Source: Klebsormidium nitens (taxonomy: Eukaryota > Plantae > Klebsormidiophyceae). Taken from it: DNA of 64,000 nt. Where the stretch lies: assembly GCA_000708835.1 (NCBI GenBank), contig DF237018.1:176589-240588 (forward strand). Reading direction: 5' to 3'. The stretch's first letter is position 1. Every line of letters begins with the position of its first letter. The notes below the pieces were generated by a model that was given only the letters and a program-made list of their open reading frames with translations, had not been told where the DNA came from and did no database searches. A program made the position numbers and the translations under genes. Shown one piece after another: positions 42,602 through 64,000 of the stretch.

Positions 42602-43576
42602 CTGCAAGAGTAAGAAGACAAGCACACTGAATAAACCCCTGGCAGTTGTTGGTGAAATGTAAACAAGCAACTAATTGCTCTGGGGAGCAAAAGAAAGAGA
42701 CACACACCTAGGAGACAAGGAGACGGACACATGGCGGGTGCACAGCAAAGTAGTCAAACCTCTAAAACGTGCAGCAGAAGCCGGATCTTTAAGTGGCAGG
42801 GAAACACAGCAAGAGGATGCTTGTCACTGGCAGACCAGGTTCGGCTTTTTGGAACACCGTATCCAGGAGTTTACAGCAATCTGAAGGACGAGAAAGCTAC
42901 ACTTAGATAGAAAGGATCGATGGTGCATCACATGATTGCCTCGTAAGTGGAACAAAGCCGGTTCGAGTCTTCTGCGCGATTAGTAGCTCTGCTCAGCCAA
43001 AATCTGCTCGTTTCATTTTAAATCTCACAGAAATAAACAGGGCCTTATGCTGAATGCTGGCAGCTGAGTATAACAATTCCCACACAATTCAACCTTCATA
43101 CCAGAAAACATTGAAAGCTGCAAATGTGGCTGTCACACATCTTTCCGACGCCACTGGCTTACTTGGAGTCTGGGGACGCTTCATCTTCAGGAAAACCGTT
43201 ACCATCTTCGCTCCAAGCGGTCTCGTTGTCATGAGAGGTTCTCTGTGAGGCCCCCTCTGCACTGTGAGTTTCCATCTTTTATCGTTCAATTGCAGCGCCG
43301 GCTCCTTTTTACAATATTCACATGGCCTCCGCTTCAAGAGGATGCATTGCCTACGTCGAGACTACAAAAGATTGGCAACATCAGATTTTGCAAATCCTTC
43401 AGGCTCTGCTCAGCTGGCGTTCAGCCTGCCTGTTGGTCCGCCATGACGGGGTTCCTTGGACACTGATGTGACTTCATTGGGAGGGCCGTGAAATTTCTTG
43501 AAAGTTCCAACTTGAAGTTGAAGGACGATCGACTCCAGTTTGCGCCTAAGTTTTGGCGCCAAGTTGACCCATGCAG

Positions 43577-43637
43577 TTTAGGGGCTTTAGGGTTTTAGGG
43601 CTCCTTGGATATCGGATTGAACTGAACCAAACCCTAA
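43577..43637. promoter_or_regulatory. Telomere-like repeats / telo-boxes in the short divergent promoter between the LOTUS-RRM gene and cassette A
   Basis: tttagggGCtttagggTtttaggg at 43577-43600 and AAACCCTAA at 43629-43637. The homologous motif cluster in copy B is at 52706-52771. Confidence 0.6.
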
Positions 43638-43922
43638 AACCAGAGGCAGTCACGATGCCAGATGATCCCCTTCGCGAGGCAAGCTGTTGCGCTCCTGTTG
43701 CGTGACCATCCCCTTCACCAAACCTGAAATTGCGCCTGTCCATTGCAGATCGAGTTTGCAGTCAACGTGCTGGCGCTTCCCTGTTTCACTTTTTGAGCTC
43801 CCTCAGGTGTCTTGGTACTTATCTTATCGTATTCTTAGATTGGATCTGCTCGAAAACTAGTGACAATTTGGCTCACACAGAAGACGCCCAGCATTGCATT
43901 GATCGAACGCCTGCCCGAGGTG

Positions 43923-44849
43923 ATGAAGATGGATACTGTCAAACTCACCGTCCTGCGCGGCACGCTGGACGAAGAGAATCCCCTCTCGCTTCTCCGTGGC
44001 AATGAGCACATATGGACCAAGGTGTTTGGCTTAGTAGACACTTGGTATGAGGAGCACATAGACCGGAAGTCAGTGGCATTCGACATGGTGGAGACCTTTA
44101 GGGGGCCGCGTTCCTCGCGCCCCTCGCGCCCCGCGCTAGTCTCCTTCCCAGAGCCCCAGGGCATCCAAATCAACATGATGCCAATCAAACTGTTCGATCT
44201 TTACGACACCGTCCCAGCAAACTGCCAGCAGTACATAAGCTGCATCAAGATGTGCGCGGGCGAATCGCGCCAGAAGGACTTCAACCGCGTCGCATACTTG
44301 ACGATCCACGAGAGTGTCGTCCCCGTGGGAGAACCGCAGCGCCGGCCTGGGCTACACATTGAGCAGCCCGGCGGAATTCGGGATGGCGGCTCGGCCAAGA
44401 CACTTGAACACGGACAGTATTACTGGGGCAAGGGGTGGAAGGACGCAGGCCGCAACGAGCTTTCCGATGGGATCTACATGGCTTCCAACGTGAGCAATTC
44501 TTGCACCGTGTGGCCGGTGTTGATCCAGAAACCAAGCGATGTGACGGACCGTCATGGGGGCATTGAGCACATGAGGGAGCGCTTAGGCCCTGGACGAAAC
44601 TTGGCAGCGGGAGAGTTGTGCTGGTTCACCGACCGCACGCCGCACGAGGCGAACCCCCTAACAGCCCCCTCCGATGACCCCGGCGCGAAGTTCAGAGCCA
44701 GGAGCTTTTTCCGCTTAGTGGTGGGGCAAATCTCGGTGTGGTACTCCAAGCACAACACCCCAAAACCCGTTGGGGGTGCTGCCGGACGCGCCAATCTCGG
44801 ACGAGGACAAGTTCAGTTGAAAGGTGAGGACTCGCACGTCGTCCTGTGA
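43923..44849 (+). CDS. Intronless putative 2OG/Fe(II)-dependent dioxygenase-like (DSBH) protein, copy A, with a +1 frameshift near the C-terminus
   Basis: Motifs QINMMP, YLTIHES, QRRPGLHIE (HxE at 44355-44363), GIYMASNV, LCWFTDRTPHE (distal His 44643) and RSFFRLV. Extra A at 44762-44765 (caaaaccc versus caaaccc in copy B) replaces NPLGVLPDAPISDEDKFS* with KPVGGAAGR...HVVL*. Confidence 0.65.
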   Translation: MKMDTVKLTVLRGTLDEENPLSLLRGNEHIWTKVFGLVDTWYEEHIDRKSVAFDMVETFRGPRSSRPSRPALVSFPEPQGIQINMMPIKLFDLYDTVPANCQQYISCIKMCAGESRQKDFNRVAYLTIHESVVPVGEPQRRPGLHIEQPGGIRDGGSAKTLEHGQYYWGKGWKDAGRNELSDGIYMASNVSNSCTVWPVLIQKPSDVTDRHGGIEHMRERLGPGRNLAAGELCWFTDRTPHEANPLTAPSDDPGAKFRARSFFRLVVGQISVWYSKHNTPKPVGGAAGRANLGRGQVQLKGEDSHVVL

Positions 44850-46189
44850 CTCGAATTCACTGGTTGTCAGCTGACCAGTGGTGGAAGAAGCGCCAAAGCT
44901 CCAGAGATGCACCTGAGTTGTTCCGAAGAAAGAATGGCTAAGCAGTGTGAAGACATCCAGAGGAGGTAGCCCGTCTTGAAACACCGCTATCAGCTGGTTC
45001 AGGCTGCCTGCTTTCCTAACTTTATAAGTGCTTCATAAGTGCTGATGCCTGCGCGCAACAGATTGAATACGGTTCGAAACTGGGCTCACTTTCTTGAAAC
45101 GACCCCAGGCAGTCAGTGAGCTTCCGTTCTTGAAGTGAGAGGATGAGGTGCGCAGGCAGCCAAGATCACACACAAGAATTTCTGGAGTCTGCTCCGGGAA
45201 TCTGTTCTTCTCTTGTTTTCGTGCACTGTTGTTTTAATCCATGGAGAAGATGGGTAGGATCTGTGAGTGCTTACCAAGTTTGGCTGGGCACCTTGCAAAA
45301 AGCGCTCAGACAAGACCAGAAAAACGAATTTCGGAAACGTCGTTAACTGCCAGGTGGATTAGCTGATTATGCTGCCTTTTTTCTGAATTTGACATACAGA
45401 ACTCTTCCAAAAAGAAGAGACAGTCTAATCATAGGAACAAGACCACTCCTTGTGGTCTATACCCATTGTCACAATCTTGTACATGCAGATAGGACACACT
45501 TCCTCTACAGGTGACTAGTCAGAATCCTTGGCTAACGCTTGAGGGCAATCCGCCAAGCTTGGGGGCTAGACCAGAATGGACCAATGGACATGAAGGTGAC
45601 TTCCCTTTCTGCTCAAGTAGTAGAGGGGCGCTGGACTACTTCAGAGGCACTTGTCAGTGCAGGATCCACCAACAGAAAGACTATCGATGGATGAGAGGTG
45701 ACGTTTAGCGGCACCTGTTAGCACTGGGCTTTCAAAAGTTTTGGTCTTCAATTATCTCGTGAAGCGGAGAAGCGGCATTCTTGTCAGGAGGAACTTCAAG
45801 TTGATGCGCTTTTCAGGTGTACATTGCCACAGTTGGCAGACGAGCTGGCTGGTTGTCTCTTCCTTACGTAGACTGCAAACTTGAGTTGAGAACTCCTTTA
45901 CTGGAAGCTTATGTACCGGTACGGTCAGTAGGCTGAGTCTGATTACTACTAGTTTGTGTACGCAGGCACTGGTGAGTCTGAGAGCTTTGGCAGGCCCAGC
46001 AAGTTTGCAACGCATGCAGCAACCAGCATTAATCAGATTAGGGGCATACTTGTTTTGTGTTTGACCAGCCATCGTTGGTGAATCGGGCCCATCGTTGTTA
46101 AATCAACTCGCGATCGAACATAAGTCAACCATTCTGAGTGGACGGTTGGCCGGTCACCTAGCAAAAGCAGGACAAGAGCGTCAAGAGCG

Positions 46190-46720
46190 ACAAGAGCGCC
46201 ATCATGCACACCGGCATGCCACGCGCAACTCGAACGTGGGTGAGGTGCAGGTGCAGCGCATGTACTCGGTTGCTAATCATGCAAATGCCACCCGACCAAA
46301 TCCTTATATACGATCGAATCATGTCAGCTAGTATGCAATACACACTTTTTACCGGGTCCTGCAGGACCCGCATGCGCTTACTAGTTAGATCATTGATTCG
46401 ATCATTAACGTGACTCAGATTCGATTGATCGAGGCCGAGGCCTCACGAGCACGCCGTCACTGCGCTATAGCTCGTTCATGCTTTTATTGAGTTCATTTCA
46501 TGCACATGTGTGGGATCGGCAGGATCGCACGGGCCCTTGCACTGGCAGCATGTCAGGCGGGCCCGCCGGCCACGCCGGCGTGTCCCCAGAATCATGCTAA
46601 GTGCGTGCATGTTTCAGAGATGATCATTTTGGAGAATGGATGCAGTACTAACGTACGTGTTGGCGACAGTGTGCGTAACATAATGCGATATTCATAGGCG
46701 CCATAAGTCGAGCCAACCTG
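46190..46720. other. Palindrome-dense spacer between convergent genes of cassette A
   Basis: Perfect 18-bp palindrome CGGGTCCTGCAGGACCCG at 46353-46370, CGCATGCG, CGATCG, ACTAGT, AGGCCT, GGGCCC and many CATG/TGCA. Confidence 0.5.
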
Positions 46721-47011
46721 ATCCGTTGCAAATCAACGTTGGAGCCTGCATGGTCGAATCTACACGCGGCTGAGAAAAATCTGAGCATGCCCGCAGAAAT
46801 ACGTTCACGTTCCGTTCCTCTACAGCTAGCGACACTTGCACAGAAGCTGTTCGTGGTCGTGGGACTCATTGACAAGAGTCCAGCAACGCTTTTCTACGGC
46901 ATAGACCTGTCAAAGACGAGGGCGCCCCTTTTGGACGCTAGGACTTGGGTACTTAACACAGTTTACCGCAACACGGATCAAACACCACCCAAGATCTCAA
47001 CGGCGACTGCT

Positions 47012-50000
47012 TCACCCTTTCGGAACGCACGCCAGCTTGTGACCCCCTCCCTTCCAGTGAAGAGTTTGACACTCCCTGCATGTGACAGGCTTGAGCTTCA
47101 GCTGGACACACTCGGATTGGCAGACTTGCGTTTTCGCAGCAAATCTTCACTCCCTTTGCTTTTACCAAAAGCGACGGCTCTCGACGATTGCAATTGATGA
47201 CTCATTAACATGAAAAGAATGAATGCTACTAGACGGGTTGCAACAAAGCAACGAATGCGACTGGCGCTTACAGGCATGCTTCGAGGAGCAACGTAATCAC
47301 CTGGCCTTTCTCCGTCAAATCCGACAGGGTTAAGCCAGATAGGTAAGTATTTTGCACCGAAACAATGAACAAGACGCCGTCCGTCGTGAACGAAGCAACA
47401 ATTACGAGCAGAATAAATCTGAAGTGAAACAAACGCGAAGGAAAGGCCAAAAGGCGCCTTAACCGGGAGCGTCTCACTTGGAGCAGTAGCGCAAGACTCG
47501 GCAGCGGCCGCATCGGCTCTGCGCGTCGGGTTTGCCGCAGTTGGCGCAGAGCGAAAGGTCCTTCTTGTCGGCGCGCGTGGAGATGGTTTCAGTAAGGGTG
47601 GGGCCGTTAGAAAAACCCTGTCGGGAGAGGATGAACTACACTTGGCAGAGCGAACCGCAGGATCGTACACGTGTCAAGCCAACAAGGGGAGGGTTTACTT
47701 GGTTGCTGTGGTGTTATCAGTTTGCCTGGATAGGAACTGACATAAAAGCCGGCAATCACAATCTTCCGCCAGACATTTCGCGTTCAAGAAAGGTCTCTGC
47801 ACCAAAATTCTGTGGCCTCCCCGTTCTGTTTAGCGTTTGACCTCGTCAAAGGGGCGCTCTGGTAAGGTGGCGCTTTGTTGGGCATCTCCAGCTCTCCTTA
47901 GAGCTCCAACGCGAGGAGGTAACCTAAGCCTTACTCTGTGCATTCGTTCAGCACTCCCCGGGATTGCTGCGAGCGCTTCATACGTGTTAAAGTTCGTCAC
48001 GTGCTCATGACCCCAGATACGCATCCATCTCAAAGACAATTTTGCCCGATTCCCCGCCCTATTGGAACAACATTTTTTTTAACAAATGCTCACCTGCAGA
48101 TTTTCGACTACACGCTGCCCCTTCCCCACCCGCCCCCTGAGCAGGTCCCCCAGATTGCCCCCGAAACCCCCCAACTGCGAAGTGTACAGTTTCGACTCGG
48201 ACTGTGTGCTAGCTGTCGATGCTAACGCTTCTTTCAGCGCCCGTTGCCGATCGGCCAGGTTGAACTCGGTGAAGTCGAAGCGGCCAGTTACGTTGCACGC
48301 CTCGCCGCACTCGGCGAGCTTCTTGCGGTACTCCGGGTGCTTCTTGTTTTTCAGAATCTGCGGAGAGAAAGAGCGGGTTGGAGGTGGGTTGGGCAGATCC
48401 GAAACTCCCGATTCCATCCCAAGCTCTAGTGATTCAATTGCACGTGACCATTGCAGAAACGAAGAATCTCCTAAGTCCTCAAACTAGCAAGTCGCGAAGA
48501 GGGGAGTTGAGCATTGCGTTTTGAAGTCCTGAGACCGATTTTAGTGATCGCCGTTTGGCCGCCTTGATATGCTTCCCGATGTGCAAGTCCGTCCCATTTC
48601 CGGCAGTTAGCAAACCAACTGAAGGCCCTTGACAGCGTGCTTGCAAAACAGTAACCAGGTGTAAAAGCCGTTGCAAAGCTTATGATAGTTGCAGATTTAG
48701 ACACTGTTTAGGTTAGTATGCGCATTTGTTGCGCCCAAACCGCCGTTGCAGATTTAGACACTGTTTAGGTTAGCATGCGCATTTGTTGCGCCCATACCGC
48801 CGTTGCCCTCAAAGGCCCCAAGAGACAACGAAGCTCGAAGGCTCACACGAAGCGACTGAGAGCCCCAGCAAACCCAATTGGGCATACCGTTTCCAAGTTG
48901 TCCGGCCACTCGGGCGAGGAATCCTAGCGAATTTTACGTTAAAGAAAGAGGCCTGTAAAGGTGGGGTGCATATATTGAACGGCAGAATTCCAGGTCGAGA
49001 ACAAGGTTAAGGAGCAGTCTTTTGCACTAGCGCAACTCTCAAACCAGAGGACCGCTCAGAAGTCGGTGAAACGAAGGAACAGGGAGGAGCATGACCGCAG
49101 TCTGCTATCTTCTCTACAATCCGTTCGTTGAATTGATAAGGTAGACCGGTTACCTGCAGCGTCTTGTTGTACCGGACGTTGCCGTGACCATCTTTCGGGG
49201 GGCACCTCCCGCTGCCTTCCAGCACTTCGCAGGCGCGGTTGACTCCTCTGGGCTGTAGAAACACCGAAAGCAATGTAGTTCGGTCAAAGCGTAGAAATAT
49301 AGCACAAATCTCTTTGCCATTCCAGCAGTTCGCAGGCGCCGATTGATTCTCCGGGCGTACAAAGCCCCGGGAATAAAAGCTGTTTTAGTTAACGCGTTAA
49401 GAAACAGAGTAGGAATCCGCTAGGGATCATCATAAATTTGCCGCCTTCCTCGTTCGAGTGGGGCTGCCAACGGTCGTTGATCGAACCTGGTACATAGTTT
49501 ATGAAGTTGGAATAGAAAGCTTCCTACCAGTTGCGGGTCAGATGCAACAAGGAAGAAATACATGTGTTCTCGCTTCGGTTTGCTACCAACTGCTTAGACT
49601 GAAGCCGGTCAGAGGCAGACTGTATACAAACTGTTAGAAATTCTCTGTCGCACGGACACATGAGGTTGAGGACTCAACAGCGACCGGCGTTGTAAAAAGA
49701 GTCCAGCAACGGAAGGAAAGGCTTAAGAGAACCCACCTTAAAATGTTCTCGACTTCAAGTTCGTGACGCCACATGTCCCCAATGTCGTACGTCCAGCCCA
49801 GACGGGCGCCTTTTTCCGTCAGCAAGTCGCCGAGCTTGTACTGCAAACCAATGCGCAAAGGGACCGCGTCAGGGGTATCATACACACTTCAGACTCTGCC
49901 TACCACTGCGTCAGGGAGCTTTTATCAACGCGAAGAGGGGTGTTTCTTCGACGTGCATTTGTAGCAAAGGCATGCGTCGCCCAAATCTTACGGACTTTTG

Positions 50001-52162
50001 TCAGGGCAGGGTAATGACAAACGAGCGAGAAACAAATGTAAACGCAGAAGCCAAAGCATGAGATGGATTCGTCTCCGGCCTGGCGCATAAAGTACCCTGA
50101 AGACAGAGACGTCAGGAGCACTTTCGTCAGGAGCATTTCTCTCAGCCAGCCAGAGTGAAAGAGCAACTTCTATCGAACATTGTTCAGCTCACATCAAAAA
50201 CTCCCTTGACTGCTTTTAGACAAGTCAAAGAAAGTAATTGACCGACAAATAAAGGAGGAGGAGTATGACCTCGCACAAAAATCATGCAATCTTCGTCGTG
50301 ATCACAACAGTTGCCTCACCTTCTTGTCGTCCATCAGGTAAAAGTAGCTGAAGTTGACGTGCATCATGTCGATTGCGTTGCTGTCCTTGGGCACGAAGCA
50401 CGCGCCTTCCCGCCGGTCGCAGAACACGTATCCATGGTAGTTGCGCACCCAACCCGTTATCGGCATTAGAACTTTGTCCGCCAGCGTGTTGAGCACGATT
50501 CCGCCAGAAACCTTGAATCTGCGAGACAGAGAGTATACAATGCGCGGCCTGGCTTTGTCAGCGGGTCTCTCGACTTTTCTTGAAGTCGGAAATCTTTTGA
50601 GAAGGCGCGCTTGCCCCAGTGGAACCCAGCAGGTTTGGTTCAGCCTGTCTCACGTCAACTTTTCTGATCACCCTTTTGAATACAAACCCTTACATGAAAA
50701 CACATTCAACACAATAATCAAGACCTGGAGCTATCTGTCCAAGCACTCAATATGGTCAGTGTCTGGGTCACGGTCAGGTTGTAAAGGCTGTTGTGGGTTC
50801 GGTGTTCTCTTTGTTTCGGGGGTATCGGCCCTGCTGACCCTATTGTGTAAGAGTCTTCCATGAGATGTGTCTTCCCCATTAGGCTTGGCGTGCGCATGAA
50901 AAACGGAGATTCCTGTCGATAAAGACCTGTATCTATGCCAACTATAAGCTCTATCCACATATCCCCATCACGTATCTTAGAACTTGGTCGAAAAGTCTGA
51001 ACCTTCTGTCCTGAGGTCACCGCATGAGTTCCTGACCACTCATCAACCTCTGTTCTTCAAGAAAGACTTTCTGAACCTCCTTTCCTGAGTCCCCACCAAG
51101 CTAGTGCCGATTGATGTTGGCGGTATCAAACAGCACAACGTTTCTTCCCATCACCTCTGCCCACATGACTCAATTCTGACCGCTGTACTCACCTTTCTCC
51201 AGACGGGGGGATCCAGCTCAGGCATGTACATCTTAATTGCATAATCCTGCTTGTACCGCTGCGTCGCCCTGTCTTTGGCAGCCGCCAACTCTTCATCTTT
51301 CCGTTCCGCCAACTGCAAAAAGATGCTGAAACTGAGAGACTAATGCAGACATCCAGTTCCAGTTGGCCAACAGCAAGACTCTCTCGAAGGTGGTCTCCTT
51401 TTTCCCCTTTCAAAGTTCTGTGCATACATCAGCGCGGTCAGGGAAGCTGGATTGACTGGGCTTTCTTTGACTTGACTCTGTTTGGTTGCGACATACCACG
51501 CCAACTCAAGAGCTGGATGCTTCAAGGCGTTGAAGAAAAGGATTCACCCTCTACTGCGAATTAGAATTGGGAGACTGTACACTGCTGGGTTTGTGATTGG
51601 GAGACTACAGCGCTCCAAGTCAACAACTCACAACCTCCTCCTGAAATGGATACATATCAACAATCAAGCGCTGAACGCAGGAGGTTTACGGAGAGAGGCT
51701 AGTCCAGGACTTTGTAACATTATCAAAGTGCAATGTGACAACCAGCGCAATGTCCCTTTCCGAGTAGATCATCTACGTCTGCATTTGCCGCATCGCCCGT
51801 GCCATTCCTTACTCTGGCCCCGTCTCTTGCTGATCCCCACCTTCCAACACTCCCCACCGATCAACCACCTCCGCTTTCGGCCGCCATACGGCTGGGTCCT
51901 CTTCGCGAATGACCCGCAGAATCGCGGACAGATCGTCATGCGGATCAATGTGCACAAAAGGCCCCATGCCTCTGCTGCTGCGCAGTGGCGCTGCCGCTGC
52001 TGAGGTTGGCGCAGCCGCTGCTGAGGTCAGCGCGGAGCTAGCCTCGCTCATGCCTGCAATGTGTGTGCCCTCGTCTTTGTCGCTCATCTCCGAACTGGAC
52101 CCTTTACCCTGATCCTCCTCACCTGATGCAATGCCAAGCTTGTCCCACTTCCACAAGTCCAC
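47012..52162 (-). pseudogene. pRiA4b ORF3 (MM3350)-like domain + C-terminal MYND zinc finger gene, copy A, disrupted
   Basis: Exons encode FKVSGGIVLNTLADKVLMPITGWVRNYHGYVF, YKLGDLLTEKGARLGWTYDIGDMWRHELEV, EGSGRCPPKDGHG and CANCGKPDAQSRCGRCRVLRYCSK-ECQTLHWKGGGHKLAC*. Lesions: in-frame TAA at 51809-51811, TAG at 51773-51775, and a 1-nt deletion near 49236. The 5' end is unresolved. Confidence 0.8.
48688..48806. repeat. 57-bp near-perfect tandem duplication in an intron of copy A
   Basis: gttgcagatttagacactgtttaggttag(t/c)atgcgcatttgttgcgccca(a/t)accgcc at 48688 and 48745; not duplicated in copy B. Confidence 0.9.
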
Positions 52163-52669
52163 TATTGTTGATACCAGGCCTGTCTGACGGCAAATCTACC
52201 ACTTCACAAAGTGCGGAGCGCAGATTGCTGTGTTGCCGCCTTGCTCCAGGAACTCGTGAACCCTTCTTCTAGACCCCTGTCGTTGTAGCCCGCTTTAAAA
52301 ATACCAACAGGGCGGATACCTAGTATCTATGATTGTAGTCTGTATGAACTTTCTAAAATAAAGTCTTGCACGCGCGGCTGGTCAGGTAGCTGTCGCAGAG
52401 GAGCATACGCCTCGAGGGCTAGTCATGGAGTGAACGCTTGATGTCCATCAACTTTCTACAGACAAAGGGAGAACAGAATGAGCAATAAAATCTAGGACCA
52501 GCTCCTACAGGGCTCCTAGTACCTAGTTACAGTAGGCTACTGTAGCTTTGGAAATGAAGAATCAGAAGATGGCAGGAAGATGTGCTGGCATTAACATTTG
52601 TGTGGGCGGAAGATGCAATGTCTTTCTGACTTTGTCACTTTGTCAGTGTCAGTGTCACTGCGTGTCGTG

Positions 52670-52702
52670 ATTGGCTAGCTAGCTTTCCAAGGGGTTCACG
52701 TG
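52670..52702 (-). promoter_or_regulatory. CCAAT box + G-box upstream of the MM3350/MYND gene, copy A
   Basis: ATTGG at 52670-52674 and CACGTG at 52697-52702. Conserved in copy B (61690-61694, 61717-61722, plus a second CACGTG at 61726-61731). Confidence 0.4.
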
Positions 52703-52913
52703 GACTTTAGCCTTTAGGGTTTTGGGTTACCTTAAAGTTATAGCCAGCCTTTCGAGACAACCAAACCCTAAAACCAGAGCCAGTGCTAGACTGAGATGAT
52801 CCCCCTTGCTCGTTCAGGCTGAACTTCAGCTGAACATTGCGTGAGTCGGCAGCGTGACCATCCCCTTCACCAAGTGCTGCAGACCTGAAAAGCGCGTGTA
52901 CACTACATGCATA

Positions 52914-53180
52914 CCGTACCAACACGCCGGTTGGGCAGATTTTTGCCCAATAATTAATTACGTACGAATTGAAATTTGGGCAACTCATTTTGGAATTTTT
53001 GAGAATTTGAAATTTTTAGAATATATGCTCGAGAACTCTTTTTCCACCAGCCAAAGTTGATCAGAGATTAAATATTAGAATTTTAATTCATTTGAAAATT
53101 TGGGCAGAATGAAAAAAAGAATAAAAATAGTCAAAATCAAATATAATTAATTGATGCCCAACCGACACGTGTTGGTACGG
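52914..53180. mobile_element. 267-bp AT-rich MITE, Tc1/mariner-like (TA target-site duplication)
   Basis: TA at 52912-13 + CCGTACCAACACGC-CGGTTGGGCA ... TGCCCAACCGACACGTGTTGGTACGG + TA at 53181-82 (imperfect ~26-bp TIRs). Non-coding interior. Absent from the equivalent site in copy A (~43730-43760). Confidence 0.85.
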
Positions 53181-53345
53181 TACATACAGCTCCGTTTCAA
53201 TGTTGCAGTCAACGTGCTGGCGCACAAACTTCACGCTCCCTCAGGTGCCCGGTACTTGTGTTCTAAATTTGTGTTTGCTCGAAGGCGAGTGACAATTGGG
53301 ACTCACCCAGAACGCGCCCCGCGTTGCATCAAATGCTTGTCAGAG

Positions 53346-54245
53346 ATGTTGAAGATGGATACTGTCAAACTTACCATTCTGCGTGGCACACTGGAGGAAG
53401 ACAATCCCCTCTCGCTCCTCCGCGGCAATGAGCACATATGGTCCAAGGTGTTTGGCCTAGTTGACACCTGGTATGAGGAGCACATAGATCGGAAGTCCGT
53501 CGCATTCGACTTGTTAGAGGTCCTTGACTCTGAAGAGAGGCCGCGCACCTTTCGCTCTGTGCTAGTCTCCTTCCCAGAGCCCCAGGGCATCCATATCAAC
53601 ATGATGCCTATCAAACTGTTCGAGCTCGACGAAACTGTCCCAGCAAACTGCCAGCAATACGTAGACTGCATTGAAATCTGTGCGGACGAAACGCGCCCGA
53701 GAAAGTTCAACCGCGTCGCATACTTGACGATCCACGAGAGTGTCGTCCCCGTGGGAGAAGCGCAGCGCCGGCCTGGGCTACACATTGAGCAGCCCGGCGG
53801 GATTCGGGACGGCGGCTCGGCTCAGCCCCTTGAGTTTGGGGAGTATTACTGGGGGAGGGGTTGGAAGGAAGCAGGCTGCAACGAATTCTTCGAAGGTATT
53901 TACATGGCTTCCAATGTCAGCGATTCTTGCACCGTGTGGCCGGTGTTGATCAACAACCCGACCGAGGTGTCGGACCGCCATGGGAGCATTGAGCACATGA
54001 GGGAGCGCTTGGGCCCTGGACGCAACCTGGCAGCGGGAGAGTTGTGCTGGTTCACCGACCGCACGCCGCACGAGGCGAACCCCCTGAAAGCCCCCTCCGA
54101 TGACCCCGGCGCAAAGTTCAGAGCCAGGAGCTTTTTCCGCTTAGTGGTGGGGCAAATCTCGGTGTGGTACTCCAAGCACAACACTCCAAACCCGTTGGGG
54201 GTGCTGCCGGACGCGCCAATCTCGGACGAGGACAAGTTCAGTTGA
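53346..54245 (+). CDS. Intronless putative 2OG/Fe(II)-dependent dioxygenase-like (DSBH) protein, copy B, intact (~299 aa)
   Basis: Open frame MLKMDTVKL...NPLGVLPDAPISDEDKFS*. HxE at 53781-53789 (RRPGLHIE), distal His at 54069 (TDRTPHE), RSFFRLV. The ORF extension upstream of 53346 runs into the MITE and is not credible. Confidence 0.72.
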   Translation: MLKMDTVKLTILRGTLEEDNPLSLLRGNEHIWSKVFGLVDTWYEEHIDRKSVAFDLLEVLDSEERPRTFRSVLVSFPEPQGIHINMMPIKLFELDETVPANCQQYVDCIEICADETRPRKFNRVAYLTIHESVVPVGEAQRRPGLHIEQPGGIRDGGSAQPLEFGEYYWGRGWKEAGCNEFFEGIYMASNVSDSCTVWPVLINNPTEVSDRHGSIEHMRERLGPGRNLAAGELCWFTDRTPHEANPLKAPSDDPGAKFRARSFFRLVVGQISVWYSKHNTPNPLGVLPDAPISDEDKFS

Positions 54246-55479
54246 AAGGTGAGGACTCGCACGTTAATCTGTTACCCAGATTCAGTGGCTGTCAGCTGAC
54301 CTGTGGTGAAAGAAGTGCCAGAGCTCCAAAGATGCACCTGAGTTGTTCTGAAGAAAGAATGGCTAAGCCGTGTGAAGACATCCAGAGGAGGTAGCCCACC
54401 TTGAAACATTGCTAACAGGTTGTTTAGGCTGCCTGCTTCTCGTAACTCGTGAGTGATTTACAAGTGCTGATTCCTGGGCCAAGTAGATCAAACTCGTTTG
54501 AAACTGGCTCACTTATTTCGAACCACTCCAGGCAGTCAGTGTGCTTCCGCCTTCTTTGGTGTCTGCAATTTGAAATGAAAGTGTGAGGTTCGCAGGCGTT
54601 TGTAGGCAGTCCAAGATCACTAGCGAGATCCTCTAGAGTCTGTCCTGGGACACCATTTACTTACTTGTGTATACTGCACCTTTGATTCCAGGATAAGATG
54701 GGTAGGAATCTGTGAGTGCTTGCCAGTTTTGGCTGGGCGTCTTGCATCAAGGATGCGGACAAGACCTGAATGTTTTTGTCAGAAACATCTTCAACTGCCA
54801 GGTAGATCAGCTGATGATGCTGACTTCTCGACTCCTTCCTTTCGCATACAAGACTCTTTCAAGTAGAGGAGACAGTCTGATCATTGGGGTACATATGCAA
54901 ATCCGTTCTGGTCTATAAGCCTTGTCATGGTATGTATATGCAGATGGGACACTCTGCATGACCGGGTGACTGGTCAGAATTTTTGGCTGACGCTTGAGGG
55001 CGACCTGCCAAGCTTGGGGCTAGACTTGAGAAGAGGTGATGAGCACATCAAGCACAGTGTTGACATCTCTTTCTGCTCAAGCTTAGAGGGGCGCTCTGTA
55101 CACTTGAGAGACACTTTGTGGGGTTCCCCAACAAGAACACTATCAGGGGGTCAGAAATGGCCAGCGCTCAGCCGCCCCTATAAAGCTTTAGGTAAGAATT
55201 TTGGTGTTGATTATTCATCCGGTGACGCGGCATTACTAGCAGGAGGAGCATCGAGTGCTTTCCAGGTGTACATTAACCCAGCCGGCACAGTGACTGTTGA
55301 TTAAAAGTTTTGAGCAGCACTATAGTATGTAGAGCAATCGTGGTTGAGTAGAGAGTGCGTCGTTGGAAGCTGATCCTAATAGATTGAGTCTGCATGATGA
55401 GGTAGTGACTGGTAGTAGACAAGAGTCTGAAAACTCTGCATAAAACCAATGCCAGCGCATGCATGAGGAGCATATTCAA

Positions 55480-55790
55480 AACGCATATATAGCAACCAGC
55501 GTAAGATTTCTATTATATGGCACACGTGACCGCAGTTGTTTCATGATTATTGTGATTGTACATGACGTACCAAGGCGGCTGACCCGTCGTTGGCCGCGGC
55601 CTTAATTCCGGCCATGCATGTCCGAAGTTGGTATACTTAAAGCGGTAAGATGGATCCGAGACGCGAATTGATTTAATTAATTGTTTATACCTTTCACTGA
55701 ATCATGATTAGCCTTATGAGCTAGCTAACCTCGAGTACTAAGTTGGGCCAGGTCAAAGATATGCATGGAAATCAGCGGTATGCCACGGCC
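55480..55790. other. Palindrome-dense spacer between convergent genes of cassette B
   Basis: GGCCGCGGCC, CATGCATG, GTATAC, GGATCC, TTAATTAA, AATCATGATT, AGCTAGCT, CTCGAG and AGTACT within about 200 bp. Not visibly alignable to the spacer of copy A. Confidence 0.5.
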
Positions 55791-56182
55791 ATCATTGTGA
55801 CCATCATGCGCAGTAAGCAAGCACACGTACCTGGCATCGGTGACGAAATGCCACCTCGAAGTACTGCCAGATTCATTCAAGGCGCCATGACCCGACCCAT
55901 GCACAGGCTCTGATCCGTCACAAACGATCAACGTAAGGCTGGTCGGATTTGCACGCCGCTGAATACCTCAGATGCCTCTCCTTTATACTTATAGGGCAAC
56001 ACTTACGCCGGAAATGTTCGTGGGACTCAACGATGAAGTTCGATAATGCGTGCCTGTAAGGCACAGGCCTGCCAGAAACAACGCCGCCCCTTTCGAAAGT
56101 TTGAACCTGGGCCTGTTCTCAGCACGATTACCGCAACACGCATCGCATGTCACCCCCAACGTATTAATGCCGAATGAACGCT

Positions 56183-59100
56183 TCATCCTTTTGGGACGCA
56201 CGCAAGCTTGTGACGCCCTTCCTTCCAATGAAGAGTTTGACACTCCCTGCACGTAGGGTGAGGAGTGGTTGGCCATACTCAAACGAGCAGACCTTAAGTA
56301 GCAGAACACTTCACTCTCTTTGCAATCACAAGGAACGACGTCTCTCGCCGAATGCCGCTGATGACCTTCTCACCTGAATTCCACGAACGCAACCGAATGG
56401 GTTGCCACCAACGAGAACTACGGCTTACAGCCATGCTTCGAGAACCGGAACCAACGGAACGACCCGGCCTTATCCCTCTATCTTTCCAACCCTTGAGGGG
56501 TACATCAAGGTGAAAGCCATCTGCACTTCGACAAGGGCGCTCCGCCTAAAGTACAGAAACGAAGGGAATGGGACAGCCTGGACTGGAAACACGACGAAAA
56601 CAGAGGCAACGTGAGAGGGCACGCGTGCGCGTCTCACTTGGAGCAGTAGCGCAGTACTCGGCAGCGGCCGCATCGGCTCTGCGCGTCTGGCTTGCCACAG
56701 TTCGCGCAGAGCGAAAGGTCCTTCTTGTCCGCGCGCGTGGAGATGGTCTCTGTTAGGGTGGGGCCGTTGGAAAAACCCTGGAGAGGATGAGCTAAACTTG
56801 GCAAAAGCGAACGGCAGGGTCGAACAGGTGTCGAGCCAACAAGGGGAAAAGTTTTTTCAGTTACGGTTGCTGTAATCAGCTTGCGTGAATAGTATCTGAA
56901 TTACAAGCCTGCAAATCACAAGTTTGCGCTAGAATCCCACGTCGAGATGGGTCTCTGAACCAAAGTTTGTGGACCTCCCCGTTCATTTTAGCATTTGACC
57001 TTGTCAAAGAGGCCGCTAAAAGGCAATCTGGACACGTGGCGCTTTGTTCGGCGTCTCAAGCTACTTCATGATCTCCAACGCAAGGAGACCACTTGACCCT
57101 TAGTCTGTGCATTCCTTCAGCACTCCCCGGAATGCTGTGCGCGCTTCATACACGTCAAAAGTTGTCATGCGCACATGACCCCAGATACGCATCCGTCTCG
57201 AAGACAATTTTGCCCACTTTCCGCCCATATCAAAACAACACTAATTCAACAAATGCTCACCTGCAAATTTTCGACGACACGCTGCCCCTTCCCCACCCGC
57301 CCCCTAAGCAGGTCCCCCAGGTTGCCCCCGAAACCCCCCAGTTGCGTAGTGTACATTTTCGACCCGGACTGTGTGCTAGCTGTCGATGCTAACGCTTCTT
57401 TCAGCGCCTGTTGCCGTTCTGCTAGGTTGAACTCGGTGAAGTCGAAGCGGCCGGTTACGTTGCACGCCTCGCCGCACTCGGCGAGCTTCTTGCGGTACTC
57501 CGGGTGCTTCTTGTTTTTCAGGATCTGCGCAAAGGAAGAGCGCATTGGGGGCAGTTGAAAAACTTCAGGATTCTCGATTCCATCTCAAACCTCAGTAACT
57601 TGATTGCACGTGAGGTATGCGGAAACGAAGATCTCCTGACTCGTCAGAATAGCAAGTCGCGAAAAAGGGGGGATCGAATGAATTGCATTCGAAAGTCCTG
57701 AAACTGATTTCGGTGACCGGTTGGCCGTCTTGATATACTTCCCGAAATGCAAGTTAGGCCAAGCCCCGGCAATTGTCAAACAACCGACGGCCTTTGTCAG
57801 CGCCTTGCAGAACGGTGATCTGGTATCATAGCCAATGCAAAGCTTAAGATTATCTACAAATCCTCTTCGAGCTTCAAACTGGTTTCTACAAAGTAAGGGT
57901 GCGGACTTGTTGCGGCCAAAGCGTGTGACGTGTTCCAAGGCCCCAAGAAACAACGAAGCTCAAAGGCTCGCACGAAGCAACTGAAAGCACCAGCAAATCC
58001 GATTTGGGTATACCGTTTCCAAGTCGTCCAATCGGGGAAGGAATCCTTGCGGACTTTACGTCAAAGGACAGAGGCCTTTAAAGAGGGGCACAGAATTTGA
58101 ACGGCAGAAGTCCAGGTCGGGAACAAGGCTATGGCGCAACCCCTTGGGGTTGAACCAATTCTCAACAAAAAAGTCGCTCAGAAGTCGGGGAAACGAAGGA
58201 ATTCGAAGGAGCATGACCGCAATCTTTGGTCATCTCTTCGATCCGTTCCTTCAAATTATAAGCTAGACCAGTCACCTGCAGCGTCTTGTTGTACCGGACG
58301 TTGCCGTGACCGTCTTCCGGGGGACATCTCCCGCTGCCTTCCAGCAGCTCGCAGGCGCCCGTTGACTCCTCTGGGCTGCAGCGAGCATCCGAAAGATTGT
58401 CTTATTCAGTCCAAGAGTGAAGACACCGCTTCGCAGCATCATTTAGTTGTCGCCATTCTCGTTCGTCTGGGGCAGTTGAGCGAACCTGCTGCAGTTTTCT
58501 CGGGACTCGAAGGAGCCGGCTTCTGACGATTTGCGGCCACTTTTGCATAAGAGGACTCAAACCACTGATGCTTGCCCTCTTCAGGCTGCGACCACTTTTC
58601 TAGATTGACGCTGACTGGAGGCGAACGTTATATCACTGTTTAGAGAGTCTCTGTTGTACGGACAACTGAAATCAAGGACTCACGCAGCGACCGGCGCTGT
58701 AACGAGAGTCAGTGATTGAAGACAAGGGGTAAGAGGACCCACCTCAAAATGTCTTCGACTTCGAGCTCGTGGCGCCACATGTCCCCAATGTCGTACGTCC
58801 ACCCCAGACGAGCGCCTTTTTCCGTCAGCAAGTCGCCGAGCTTGTACTGCACAGTTGCAGCACAATGGGACACGTCAGGAGTACTATACATACTCCAGAC
58901 TCTGCGCACCGCTGCGACAGGGAGCTTCGATTAGAGAAGAAGGGTGTTCCTTTGACCCTGAATTTGTCTGCAAAGGCACGCTTCGCCACATTCTGACGAA
59001 CTTGTGTCAGGCAAGGCATTGACAGCCGATGCGCCCACAAGAGGAGTGCCGAAGCGTCGGTGGCAACTTGACTTGCCAGAGCTCGGAGTACGTCGTCTCT

Positions 59101-61251
59101 AAAGATTTGAGTGCAAAGTCTCCCGGAATCAAATAGCCAGCAATCAATGCCCCCCCCCGAGCACAGAGTCACTTTTGTCCAACATTGCTAAGCATACCAA
59201 GGACTCTCATGCACTCGGTCTGGTCTCTGTCCCCTGGATAAATAGAAGACAGACAGAAAGGTAAGGAGACAGCCCTCACTTTAGAAGTACACAGATGCAC
59301 TTATCCTTTTTCTTCAACCGCCCCACCTTCTTGTCGTCCATTAGTACCTTCAGCTGAACTTGCCGTGCATCATTACAATCGCTTTGAAAACAATTCAATA
59401 TCAAAAAGTCAGGAGAAATTGCTCTTTTTCCCCGCAGCTCTCTCACTCTTTTATCGTCCATCAGGTAGAAGTAGCTGAAGTTGACGTGCATCATGTCGAT
59501 TGCGTTGCTGTCCTTGGGCCCGAAGCACGCGCCCTCCCTCCGGTCGCAAAACACATACCCGTGGTAGTTGCGCACCCACCCCATTAATGGCATCAGAACT
59601 TTGTCGGCCAGCGTGTTGAGCACGATTCCGCCGGAAACCTTGAACCTGGAAATGGAGAATGGAATTTCTTGCCGCAGCCAGCTTTGATCAGCGGGTTGCT
59701 TATCAGCCTTGTTAGTCAACTGTTTCCCGGAAGAGAGTGATACGCTCTTGAACCTGTTGAAAACAGCAGGAGGTTTGTTCCCGTGCTCAGCCTCATCCAT
59801 ATCAGCTTTTCCGAGTCATTGTATTGTGGTAGAAGGCTTACAGTGAGAGACTTGTATCGAACCTGGGAGCTATGTTCTGAGGCACTCAACTTGGTTAACT
59901 GGCTTGTGAGGTCAGGTTGTGAAGACTGGCGAAAGCTTCCTGTTCTTTCACTTCGACAGATCCCCCGCTTGTGTCGGTTGTTCTCATTCCTCTACTGTCC
60001 TTGGGTGTCAAAGCGGCGTGCGTGCGCATGTCACTAACTTGATGGAAAATCCGACAGCTGAGCTGTACCAGGTACAAGGATATTTCTGTGGATCATACTC
60101 AGGAGAACTTGGAAAAGAAAAACATCAGCCCTGGGTCAGAAGGTCTGAAACAATGCCCGGAGCTCACTGCTTCCACCCCTGTCTTTCATTGACAATATCT
60201 ACTTGTTCCCCAAGTTCCACCAAGCTGGCAATATCAACGTGCACACTTTTTGCTTCTGCCACGAGACTTGAAGCTGAGCGCTAAGTCACCTTCTCCGGAC
60301 GGTTGGATCGAGCTCAGGCATGTACATATTTATCACATAATCCTGCTTGTACCGCTGCATTGCCCCGTCTTTGGCAGCTGCCAACGCTGCATCTTTCCGT
60401 TCCGCCAACTGCAAGAAGATGCGCGAAGCGAGCCGCTGATGCACAATCCCAGTTTGTGTCGGCATAACCCTCTCAAAGGTGGTCTCCTTTCCCTTCCAGA
60501 GTTCTGAGCAAGTATTAGCGCAGAGAAGCCCGGATGAGTGGCGACCCCAAATCGACTTCATCCAAACGCAACATACCCTGCCAAGTCAAGGACTTACTGC
60601 TTCAATGTATTCAAAGAGGATAGACACTCTGTATCGCTGAACGGACCTGGAAGCCTTTGCAACCTGTTGGAGCCTGTTTGGGAGACTTCAGTGCTGGAGT
60701 TCAAGAGCTCACACCCCCTTCTGACATGTTGAAGCATACCAATGATCGAGGGCTAAACGCAGGAGTCTTACGAGGAAAGGCTGATCAACGCAAGTGTCAC
60801 AAAGCTACCACCCAATATGGCGACCACCGCAATGCTTGCCTTCTTGATAAACTGCACTTCAGGCGTGTCCCTCCCTGAGTAAATCATCTGCGTCTGCATT
60901 TGCCGCATCGCCCGCGCCATTCCCGATTCCGGCCCCGTCTCTTGCCGGTCCCCGCCTTCCAACACTCCCCACCTCCGCTTTCGGCCGCCATACGGCTGGG
61001 TCCTCTTCGCGAATGACCCGCATTATTGCGGACGAGTCGTCGCGCGGATCGATGCGCACAAAAGGCCCCATGCCTCTGCCGCTCCCCAGTGGCGCCGCTG
61101 CTGCTGCGGTCGATGCAGCCGCTGCTGTGGTCAGCGCAGCGCTTGCCTCGCTCAAACCTTCAGCGAGTGTGCCCTCGTCGAACCGGACCTTTCGCCCTGG
61201 TTCTCCTCACCTAATGCAATGCCAAAGCTTGTCTCACTTTCACAAGTCCAC
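56183..61251 (-). pseudogene. pRiA4b ORF3 (MM3350)-like domain + C-terminal MYND zinc finger gene, copy B, probably disrupted
   Basis: Same exon series as copy A, with PEESTGACELLEGSGRCPPEDGHG intact and MYND CANCGKPDAQSRCGRCRVLRYCSK-ECQTLHWKEGRHKLAC*. Lesions: 11-nt deletion at 60970/60971 relative to A (frameshift) and TGG>CGG at the conserved W of the PxVWRR motif (60295-60297). The 5' end is unresolved. Confidence 0.75.
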
Positions 61252-64000
61252 CACTGTTGAAACAGGGGCTGTCTGATTGGCAAAATATAATTTCACAAAA
61301 TGTGGAGCGCAGAATGCCAAGTTGCCGCCTTGCTCCAGGGTTCAGAAACCCCTTGTTCAGTCCCCTGTCGTTATAGCCTGCTTTGGAATTCCAACCAGTG
61401 CGGATAGTATCTATATTTTTGTAGTCACGAAAGGAGGTTTACAGAATCCCGTCTTGCACGAGCGGGTGGTCAGATGGAGATTGCGAACGAGCATGCGCCT
61501 TATACTTGAGGGCTAGTCACCAAGGGAACGGTTGAGGTCCGTCAACTTTTGACAGACAAAGGAAGAAGAGGACGAGCAACAAAATGTAGGACCAGCGGCC
61601 TACACACAGATGTCAGGCAGCTTTGAAGACTGAAATTGAAGATGGCAGGAACAGATGTCTACAGTCAGTCATTGCGTGACGGTGCCGTGATTGGCTAGCG
61701 AGCTTTCCACGGGATTCACGTGGGTCACGTGGTCGTAAATCTGGGCGACCGCGAAGCAGAGTACCGCGCAATCAGAGACGCCGACCCTCGAAATCACCCG
61801 GTCGTCCACCCCACATTGTAACCTTGTATATACAGCCCTGAGCTCGACCACTTGATCCGCGGTCTGCCAGTCTGCGAAGAGTTGGGAAGAGTCTGGCAAG
61901 CTGTCGATGTGAATTGGACTGTTCAATCGGGAAAATGGGGGAGAACCGGAGCTCTAGAGCTGGAGGCTCAAAGTGTCTACCACGCCGGCAAAAGTCAGCG
62001 TTTGTACATCTTGTTAAGAATCACTGGTGCATGATCAACCGTGAAAGATGCCACGTCCTGAAACGCGGCGCCGTTTCAAAGGTCCGGTTCTTTCAGCACA
62101 TCGATGACCCCCTTCTGACAATGTTGAGAACTTCGAAGCAACTTCAATTTTGAGCAGGGAGCCGCAAAACGGTGAGCTGACGTCGCTCCCCAGTATCGTG
62201 CCTGACTGGACCCACCCGTATTCTGAACAAGTCAAGGCCACCAGTCTGAGCCTGAAACAAAGGTCAACGATGCGTCTGTCGTCGTGAGAAACCTTCCAAC
62301 GTATCGGCTTGAGTAGCTTTGAGCGGCACCACCAGACTGCCTCGTCGAGAGTTTTCCCGCCCTTCTGGGCACGTAGCTTTTCCTTGGAGCAGATTAAGTA
62401 CGACGCTTTTACGCCCGGCCGTTTGACGAAGGTGCGAGAGCCTACGTTCTGCTTCTGCAATATGGTCGTTCGTCTTCATTCTCGCCAGATTCCCGCTGAA
62501 TCCGCTCATCGCTTTCTCGTACCAAATTCCGAAGTTTCCTGATCCCATAAAAGGCCGCTAAACGCATATAGGTGCCCAGATCTGTTATCATGGTCAGCCC
62601 CACTCCTCTTTTCCGTGTACGTTCAAAGCCAGTTTCTCAACCACCCCCCTTGTCAGATGGTCAACTAGATGTCAGTGCGCACCCCGTCCTAAGGAAGCTC
62701 GCCTATCTAGTTGTCATTCTCATAAGCTCAAAGTTCTGTGAGCGACCGTGGAGAGTGTGGGCTTCGTCCAACCGGAAAAATCGAGGTGTCATCTTGGCCG
62801 TTTGTGAGCCGTCTTTGACTCTTGTTGGAGTCAAAGAGGCTACCCACTTGACTGTTTAGGCAGTGGACGAGAGTAGAAGGCTTTGCACAAGTTGCTGAGC
62901 GCATCTTATGGTCAGACTCAGCCGAATCTTGCGGATCCGAAAGAGAGCCCAAGTCGAGTGAAGTCAGCGGGCCGTTCCCCTGGCATCGCGTCCCTGACGT
63001 TAGCCAGACGTCATCGGGGCAGCAGGTTGTTGAGCGACTTGCATGGCTGCGGTTGTGCCACGAGCTCACTGGCGCCCGTCTTCTTCAATTGCTTTCGTCC
63101 GCCCACTTCAAGCTGGGGCCGTTCGCTCCGGGCGCACTCTGACGAGGCCGGACTGCCTGATGGTCTTCCTGTGGATCCTCAAAACTCGCAACGGTGTTTC
63201 TTCCACGAACCTGCAACATTCCATCCAATCAACTCTACCAGATTTCGGAGACGTCGCCTGACTTCGGAGAGTTTCTTATATGTTGCAAAGTCGTTTTGAG
63301 TGTTAAACAGCTGAAATTCTGTCACTTTTTCTGGGGGCTCAACGCGGGCCTGAAAGCACATTTTGAAAACGGTATGTCGAAAGTCGTGACGCAGCTCTGG
63401 GCCTTCTTCTTTTAGCTTTGACCTTGGGGTTCTGAACACGGTGATATCTTGGAAACTATCCTCCAAATTGCATTCCGCTCATCAAATTTTGAGAGACCAA
63501 TCTGGGTGCCGAAGCCAACTTGCGAATCTTTCAAGCCAGCTCCTCGACGAGTCGCTCGTCAGCTGTTTGCGGTGGGCTTGGCTAAATCATGGTCTAGATC
63601 ATGGTCTAAAGATGGTGAACCACTGAAAGCACCTTATCTGAGAGCCAGGTTTTTCATCCCCCAACTTTACCACTGGGTAGAGGCGAAGACGGGGGGCTAC
63701 TTCCACCTCGCTCGGTGGGCGAAAGTATGTCGCGCTATAGCTGGGCAATCCTTCTTCTTGTTAGCGGGATTCCACAAAACCGACTTTTCGCAGGTGGGCT
63801 GAGAGAACGCATTCAGCGGCTGGCCATAGTTTGTGACCGTTTTCGTCACGTTTGAAGCAGTTGCCATGACAAAAAACACTTCATGTTATGATCAGCAGTG
63901 TCTCATGTAAACAGGACGAAGTATGAGCTGGTGGGTATGCAAATCTTCGTCTTTAGACTTCTTCTTGCGGTGGGTCGAACCTGAGAAGTGGTTCTAGGGG

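Follow-up and report, generated by a model that had tools for sequence, protein, structure and literature searches.

Giant-virus core genes have been recorded in Klebsormidium flaccidum/nitens and in K. subtile (Gallot-Lavallee and Blanc 2017, PMC5294986). We analyzed here a 64,000-nucleotide stretch of K. nitens DNA (scaffold DF237018.1, positions 176,589 to 240,588 of the forward strand; referred to as the window, whose own numbering is used for all coordinates), at the end of which two convergent genes, named X and Y, stand twice in tandem as units A and B. X is predicted to encode a divergent Fe(II)/2-oxoglutarate oxygenase, and Y encodes a protein with an MM3350 (pRiA4b ORF-3) domain followed by a MYND finger. 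An earlier note, made from the letters of the window alone, had taken the pair for a horizontally acquired, prokaryote-derived module. Our results suggest instead that a segment of about 9.2 kb holding two unrelated neighbours, a virus-derived X and a Y from a eukaryote-wide family, was duplicated in tandem, and that the adjacency of the two genes is probably accidental.

Compared with Fe(II)/2-oxoglutarate dioxygenases of the PhyH, KanJ and EvdO2 type (PDB entries 4xac, 7cl2, 2a1x and 4nmi), X is predicted to have the same barrel fold over residues 50-300, with an HxE motif at a strand end, a second histidine about 95 residues later and an invariant arginine on the following long strand. Unlike those enzymes, X carries an additional helical region at its N-terminus (residues 6-44), and its residues 154-177 form a loop predicted with low confidence; it also has no sequence-level match in Pfam, NCBIfam or PDB. 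Proteins of giant viruses and jumbo phages (Catovirus CTV1 A0A1V0S8Z7, Orpheovirus, phages Noxifer and RPSC1, and members from IMG/VR and from giant-virus metagenome-assembled genomes (GVMAG)) are 31-57% identical to X and share its invariant residues. In contrast to these viral relatives, the Klebsormidium X lies between intron-bearing host genes, has the G+C content at third codon positions (GC3) of the host and a telo-box promoter, and is present as three paralogues. The giant-virus transfers and inserts described by Gallot-Lavallee and Blanc concern the same host genus and probably the same broad kind of donor. Unlike those inserts, X is isolated, ameliorated, duplicated and under selection, and is not part of a viral island; furthermore, that study assigned its core genes to Phycodnaviridae-like viruses, whereas a mimivirus-like appearance is seen in those relatives of X that are named or judged by their context.

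Y can be compared with two described groups. It has a full-length match to the PF07929 domain (MM3350/pRiA4b ORF-3) of bacteria, archaea and phages and, unlike the bacterial and phage proteins, it carries a MYND finger at its C-terminus, and its gene is interrupted by spliceosomal introns. Its finger shows the complete C4-C2HC pattern of MYND proteins (PF01753) such as DEAF1, BS69/ZMYND11 and SMYD, whereas the partner domain is MM3350 and not SET, SAND, PHD or bromo.

Tandem duplication and the search for the pair elsewhere

Direct-repeat families and a blastn comparison of A with B resolved the last 20 kb of scaffold DF237018.1 (240,588 bp) into two collinear units, unit A at 43625-52703 and unit B at 52759-61723, each with telo-boxes, X, a spacer, Y and a CCAAT/G-box block. 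With a repeat spacing of 9.0-9.4 kb and block identities of 78-93%, the tandem 9-kb two-gene cassette that had been proposed for this region was confirmed. The synonymous divergence (dS) between the copies was equal for the two genes, 0.32 for X and 0.34 for Y (Y being counted exon by exon), indicating that X and Y were duplicated together, also as proposed.

The databases place four genes in these 20 kb, with products of 308, 419, 311 and 345 amino acids, the second and fourth of which carry PF07929 and zf-MYND. No third copy of X or Y, and no similar sequence, was found in the window outside units A and B. The genes called in the 20 kb around the locus were only X and the intron-bearing Y, with no cluster of viral genes there, and a search of positions 43000-62500 against Rfam gave no match. 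Both the window and the scaffold stop 2.3 kb beyond unit B.

Recurrence of the X-Y pair, a further proposal of the earlier note, was not observed. No Y exon was found within 10 kb of X at any of 21 other X-bearing loci, namely 14 in IMG/VR, four on long metagenome contigs, two in prokaryotic metagenome-assembled genomes (MAGs) and the third K. nitens X locus, which lies about 100 kb away on the same scaffold with no Y beside it. Likewise, neither X nor MYND was present at any of 80 viral MM3350 loci, which had been collected by a scan with the Y domain alignment; these viral genes were 24-33% identical to Y, lay on contigs under 72 kb and had no MYND. No X was adjacent to the Y locus of Chlorella ohadii. 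The earlier note had said that the locus would be an ordinary local duplication if the adjacency was unique to it and if both genes grouped with vertically inherited algal or plant orthologues. The adjacency is unique to this locus and therefore points to a local duplication of unrelated neighbours; X, on the other hand, does not group with vertically inherited orthologues of plants or algae. These results indicate that the adjacency of X and Y is an accident of the locus, and nothing indicates a joint arrival or a joint function.

Gene X and its viral relatives

An intronless X on the + strand had been predicted, and each unit has a single open reading frame (ORF) for it. X-A (KFL_000690390, 43923-44849, + strand), a protein of the double-stranded beta-helix dioxygenase fold, is one uninterrupted ORF. 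X-B (KFL_000690410, 100% identical; 53346-54245, + strand) is an intact ORF of 299 residues with the C-terminus ...PISDEDKFS, an ending shared with the K. subtile transcript and with viral relatives. The annotated models of both copies bypass the ORF stop by a small 3' intron, which adds 8-12 unconserved residues. Since in the K. subtile transcript and in the viral relatives the protein terminates precisely at the position of this ORF stop, the conserved coding sequence of X has no intron. A donor-like GTGAGG site is found directly after the X stop in both units (54243-54260 and 44847-44860).

Searches of X against Pfam, NCBIfam and PDB sequences gave no match at E values up to 1-10, even with a profile of 55 sequences, and X did not qualify as a member of the curated dioxygenase families (PF05721 PhyH, PF13640, PF03171 and the like). 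In the alignment of the 55 relatives, residues R141, R142, H146, H242, R261 and R265 were invariant and E148 near-invariant (at least 90% of the sequences); all three K. nitens copies of X have the complete set of putative metal-binding residues, HxE...H. R261 and R265 fall, in the predicted model, on the strand of residues 258-268 that comes after the second histidine, where a basic residue binds the C5 carboxylate of 2-oxoglutarate in this superfamily; either arginine might have this role. The AlphaFold (AF2) model of X-B had a mean predicted local distance difference test score (pLDDT) of 84.8 and a predicted template modelling score (pTM) of 0.82, with a double-stranded beta-helix core. 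When this model was compared exhaustively with 48,161 chains, all of the best 50 were Fe(II)/2-oxoglutarate oxygenases (Z 6.0-8.8), headed by EvdO2 (Z 8.8, root mean square deviation 3.7 Å over 166 residues) and followed by ColD, ThoJ, HrmJ, PAHX and KanJ. Foldseek also returned KanJ and EvdO2 as best matches, in weak agreement (E 1e-3 for KanJ). Because the list of structural matches is uniform and the HxE...H...R pattern is present, X can reasonably be read as a predicted divergent Fe(II)/2-oxoglutarate oxygenase, which may hydroxylate a substrate. The name dioxygenase, given to X from its letters, thus holds at the level of fold and motif and finds no counterpart among the sequence families of Pfam, NCBIfam and PDB.

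The relatives of X numbered 481, nearly all of them metagenome proteins, and the sources of the best 120 were inspected. Fourteen loci, one of them from a GVMAG, were on viral contigs in IMG/VR, the longest of which measured 461 kb. Two relatives lay on a 609-kb and a 753-kb contig, where eukaryote-like genes (XRN, TTL, tRNA synthetase, F-box, kinase) are densely packed and free of introns, and further neighbours of X relatives included a fusion of mRNA capping enzyme and N7-methyltransferase, FtsJ, topoisomerase IA and PIF1, as well as RING, UCH and subtilase genes. The best match in BFVD was the Catovirus CTV1 protein A0A1V0S8Z7 (34% identity, template modelling score 0.89, E 6e-21), with more distant kin in Orpheovirus and jumbo phages, and the nearest ESM Atlas clusters were 63-87% viral. 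Prokaryotes contributed two relatives among 185,579 bacterial and archaeal species genomes (one genome per species). The earlier description of X as prokaryote-like is therefore not supported; its relatives lie overwhelmingly on giant-virus contigs. One of the two is on a 1.8-kb contig of a Gemmatimonadota MAG (CAIRBD010000189.1, 72% GC) and the other, 34% identical, on a Polyangiales MAG contig (JBGCFM010000097.1, 64% GC). As both contigs are GC-rich, they are unlike stray pieces of an AT-rich giant virus, and could represent either genuine but uncommon bacterial members of the family or mistakes in binning. On the 124-kb viral contig IMGVR_UViG_3300033066_001528, two X-family genes that have diverged from each other are separated by about 14 kb, indicating that the family has been duplicated within viral genomes too.

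A tree of 126 rows was built, rooted at the midpoint, with support from the Shimodaira-Hasegawa-like approximate likelihood ratio test (SH-aLRT). X-A, X-B, the third K. nitens copy (KFL_000690220) and the K. subtile transcript formed one clade with a support of 100, nested (support 93) in a group with the protein of the 609-kb contig, and IMG/VR sequences were spread across the entire tree, surrounding the Klebsormidium clade. The K. subtile transcript is 82% identical to X and shows that the gene is expressed in that species. KFL_000690220, about 100 kb upstream on DF237018.1, is an intact ORF, 72% identical, between host genes (FHA/BRCT and a short-chain dehydrogenase). Since this third copy branches before the K. 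subtile sequence, X was apparently resident and duplicated before K. nitens and K. subtile split. The GC3 of X (0.73-0.74) is close to that of Y (0.76), whereas the viral contigs have 29-48% GC. On these sequence comparisons, X is most likely an old capture from a giant virus that is now a host gene. The horizontal origin that had been suggested for the pair would therefore apply to X, from a viral source, and a prokaryote-derived module is not supported.

Exons, transcription and family of gene Y

Y was searched exon by exon for copy A and through its database protein (P0124) for copy B. The exons of Y-A (KFL_000690400) were determined from transcript contigs of four runs from four studies, placed on positions 46900-52300. 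These RNA contigs revealed seven introns, all GT..AG, and therefore eight exons, in agreement with the multi-exon gene on the - strand that had been predicted. Exon 1 (51813-52087, - strand as for all that follow) is coding from the first ATG of the open frame and ends in phase 2, and exon 2 (51193-51312) holds the start of the MM3350 domain in the ancestral frame. Exon 3 (50320-50518) carries the MM3350 core, FKVSGG...GWVRNYH..., with a ratio of nonsynonymous to synonymous substitution rates (dN/dS) of 0.05, and exon 4 (49737-49840, YDIGDMWRHE) matched PF07929 by itself (E 1.3e-7, 32 bits). The domain continues through exon 5 (49154-49252, CPPKDGHGN), located by RNA contigs and domain search, and ends in exon 6 (48093-48357) with FDFTEFNL and a linker; a feature search of the Atlas with exon 6 gave weak PF07929 leads (score 0.80). 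The first half of the MYND finger, CANCGKPDAQSRCGRCRVLRYCSK, is encoded by exon 7 (47477-47616; zf-MYND E 6e-5) and the second half by the coding part of exon 8 (47012-47074), ECQTLHWKGGGHKLAC, after which the frame stops at 47012 and the 3' untranslated region (UTR) continues below 46900.

Y-B (KFL_000690420; 56186-61284, - strand; 345 amino acids in the database model) has the same exon pattern and is transcribed. Its protein scored 108.8 bits against PF07929 (cut-off 26.6, profile positions 3-172 of 173) and 40.3 bits against zf-MYND (PF01753; cut-off 22.7) with the C4-C2HC ligand set complete, confirming Y as the pRiA4b-ORF3(MM3350)-MYND gene it had been taken for. The pattern CxxC...CxxC...YCSxxCQxxxWxxxHKxxC is complete and is split by an intron after YCSK. 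RNA contigs carried copy B letters at five variant sites (48242-48286); as these match copy B exactly, both Y copies are transcribed, and Y-A was spliced and expressed at depths like those of Y-B. Two variants of Y-A were seen in one run each: a junction of 49840 to 50327 with seven other letters between, on the acceptor side, and an alternative exon-1 donor at 51841, 28 nucleotides upstream, which changes the phase.

A search with exon 3 against 1.84 billion representatives returned P0124 and 310 relatives. Among the full-length relatives, PF07929 was present in 69 of 69 and MYND in 58 of 69, and those with names came from Chlorella ohadii, Tribonema minus, the annelid Owenia, the hemichordate Ptychodera, basidiomycetes, an ascomycete and chytrids. 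Because relatives in fungi, animals, a stramenopile and green algae carry MYND, the MM3350-MYND fusion is old and eukaryote-wide, and not the local domestication that had been imagined. Members of the Y subfamily are 40-57% identical to each other and 25-33% identical to bacterial and phage members. The description of the Y core as prokaryote-like is correct for MM3350 outside this subfamily, where the domain is mainly prokaryotic or phage-borne, whereas Y itself belongs to a eukaryotic MM3350-plus-MYND family.

The two K. nitens Y loci have their introns at the same positions, with which those of Chlorella ohadii only nearly coincide, being 4 and 11 alignment columns off. In the poorly resolved Y tree the K. 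nitens pair was grouped at 99 and joined the Ascobolus group (SH-aLRT 87), not Chlorella, so that the tree speaks neither for vertical descent nor for transfer. The second K. nitens Y paralogue is KFL_004020010 (P0273; L022:147-3930), on scaffold DF237351.1 and truncated by the scaffold start. It contains a threefold tandem repeat of a segment of about 45 residues (QILKNK..Y.SALDEC.NAPN...) between the MM3350 core and the C-terminal FDF motif. A literature search on either term found no function for the combination of MM3350 and MYND, the ten best matches being papers on MYND only; from its domains, Y may act as a protein-binding adaptor.

Divergence of the units and competing explanations

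The regulatory blocks that had been reported ahead of both genes were found in both units. Telo-boxes (AAACCCTA) occur at 43588, 43629, 52715 and 52763, with 8 in the whole window against 1.2 expected; by motif count one pair (43588-43636) lies upstream of X-A and the other (52715-52770) between the divergently transcribed Y-A and X-B. The ATTGG...CACGTG arrangement is kept upstream of both Y copies: a CCAAT and G-box block at 52670-52702 (- strand; 90% identical to 61682-61723) precedes Y-A, and a CCAAT and double G-box block at 61690-61731 (- strand), conserved with it, precedes Y-B. The spacer between X and Y had been described as palindrome-rich. An inverted-repeat search did not bear this out: spacer A gave two palindromes, both short and imperfect, and spacer B gave no palindrome. 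The central portions of the spacers (45571-47009 and 55025-56180, including the 3' UTR side of Y) showed no similarity between A and B, with flanks 80-90% identical; this difference could stem from insertions, deletions or sequence turnover that followed the duplication.

The dN/dS between copies was 0.34 for X and 0.19 for Y, with values of 0.00-0.15 for Y exons 3, 4, 6 and 7. X-A carries an extra A in an A-run near 44762. The resulting frameshift exchanges the conserved 15-residue C-terminal end, with the near-invariant P288, K297 and F298, for other sequence; this extra A may be a homopolymer or assembly error. At the end of exon 2 of Y-A, an extra A (AGAAAG, AGAAG in B) prevents the ancestral frame, in which the first strand of MM3350 is encoded (...MYMPELDPPVWR), from continuing into exon 3. 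Exon 1, ending in phase 2, leads into a different open frame of exon 2, and this one runs on into exon 3. The RNA contigs of the four runs carry the same letters with no gaps, so this insertion is genuine. In Y-B the reading frame changes within exon 1, which is poorly conserved, but the family stretch PEVQF...WRRFKVSGG is kept. With two single-nucleotide frame changes in unit A, unit B is the better-preserved pair.

Unit A might on this account be a decaying duplicate, both of its genes becoming pseudogenes and only unit B being functional. The loss of the conserved C-terminus of X-A and of the PEVQF segment in the RNA contigs of Y-A, whose exon 2 is read out of the ancestral frame, speaks for decay, and we consider it unlikely though not far-fetched. 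The dN/dS values of both genes are too low for the free drift of one copy and indicate constraint on unit A during the greater part of its existence; moreover, Y-A is spliced and expressed like Y-B, and the insertion in X-A lies in a homopolymer. Far less can be said for X and Y as a prokaryote-derived module, domesticated by intron gain and MYND fusion and recurring as a pair. The equal dS of X and Y as one duplicated unit, the bacterial or phage-borne MM3350 proteins outside the Y subfamily and the probably foreign X agree with it, whereas the near absence of X from prokaryotes, the occurrence of the MM3350-MYND fusion from fungi and animals to a stramenopile and green algae, the solitary X and viral MM3350 loci, and the unpaired third X copy and other Y paralogue of K. 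nitens all contradict it. This reading is largely refuted, and we regard it as scarcely credible. Selection might also hold X and Y together as a functional pair, for example if the MYND/MM3350 protein recruits the dioxygenase or is modified by it. Each unit has kept the convergent pair, both genes show purifying selection, and a short region with telo-boxes forms a divergent promoter common to Y-A and X-B. Adjacency alone, however, accounts for the co-duplication, and since the third X copy and the second Y paralogue occur singly and no pairing was found elsewhere, a functional pair is very unlikely.

The direction of the transfer of X could be the reverse of the one proposed here, X being an old eukaryotic or algal gene taken up by giant viruses and inherited vertically in Klebsormidium. 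Its host codon usage, its telo-box promoter and its three copies in ordinary host surroundings are in line with this, and two points that weigh against our own interpretation favour it as well: the nearest relative outside the genus (P0004, 57% identical) comes from a contig of only 1.2 kb with 62% GC, unlike an AT-rich giant virus, and one EukProt protein (P0086) belongs to the X family. The virus-to-host direction rests on nesting in a midpoint-rooted tree with quick-search support. The named eukaryotes among the best 120 of the 481 matches were, however, two Klebsormidium species and that one EukProt entry; the viral and metagenomic members are far more diverse and surround a single Klebsormidium clade, and distant structural relatives are found in jumbo phages and other giant viruses. 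An uptake by viruses thus appears distinctly improbable. Three further points weigh against our own interpretation: a Z of 8-9 by itself is only middling for the fold assignment of X; the Y tree is poorly resolved and departs from the species tree, so that vertical descent of Y is assumed; and KFL_004020010 has no X within 10 kb downstream, its upstream side being cut by the scaffold start.

Under the tandem duplication of unrelated neighbours that we favour, a single old capture of X from a giant virus would have predated the split between K. nitens and K. subtile, and the captured gene would have gained host codon usage and a host promoter and then been duplicated at least twice. A nuclear segment of about 9.2 kb with the convergent X and Y and their promoters would have been copied in tandem, and purifying selection would have acted on both genes over most of their length. 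Unit A would later have acquired its two single-nucleotide frame changes, one in the X-A tail and one at the join of exons 2 and 3 of Y-A. A bolder proposal, to which we give very little chance, is that X represents a large virus-borne family of Fe(II)/2-oxoglutarate oxygenases acting on a host or viral macromolecule, one of which Klebsormidium domesticated and co-regulated, as a two-component unit, with an MM3350-MYND adaptor that targets it or is its substrate.

The proposal that this streptophyte alga carries a mobile two-gene module of prokaryotic origin cannot be upheld. The MM3350-MYND architecture emerges as a widespread but patchy, uncharacterised eukaryotic family, and the X family as several hundred virus-borne proteins of predicted dioxygenase fold that have no Pfam model. 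At least one lineage of this family appears to have been kept, duplicated and selected in an alga near the ancestry of land plants. X would thus be a concrete, expressed addition to the giant-virus genes that have turned into host genes, and Klebsormidium may offer a tractable host in which to search for its substrate.

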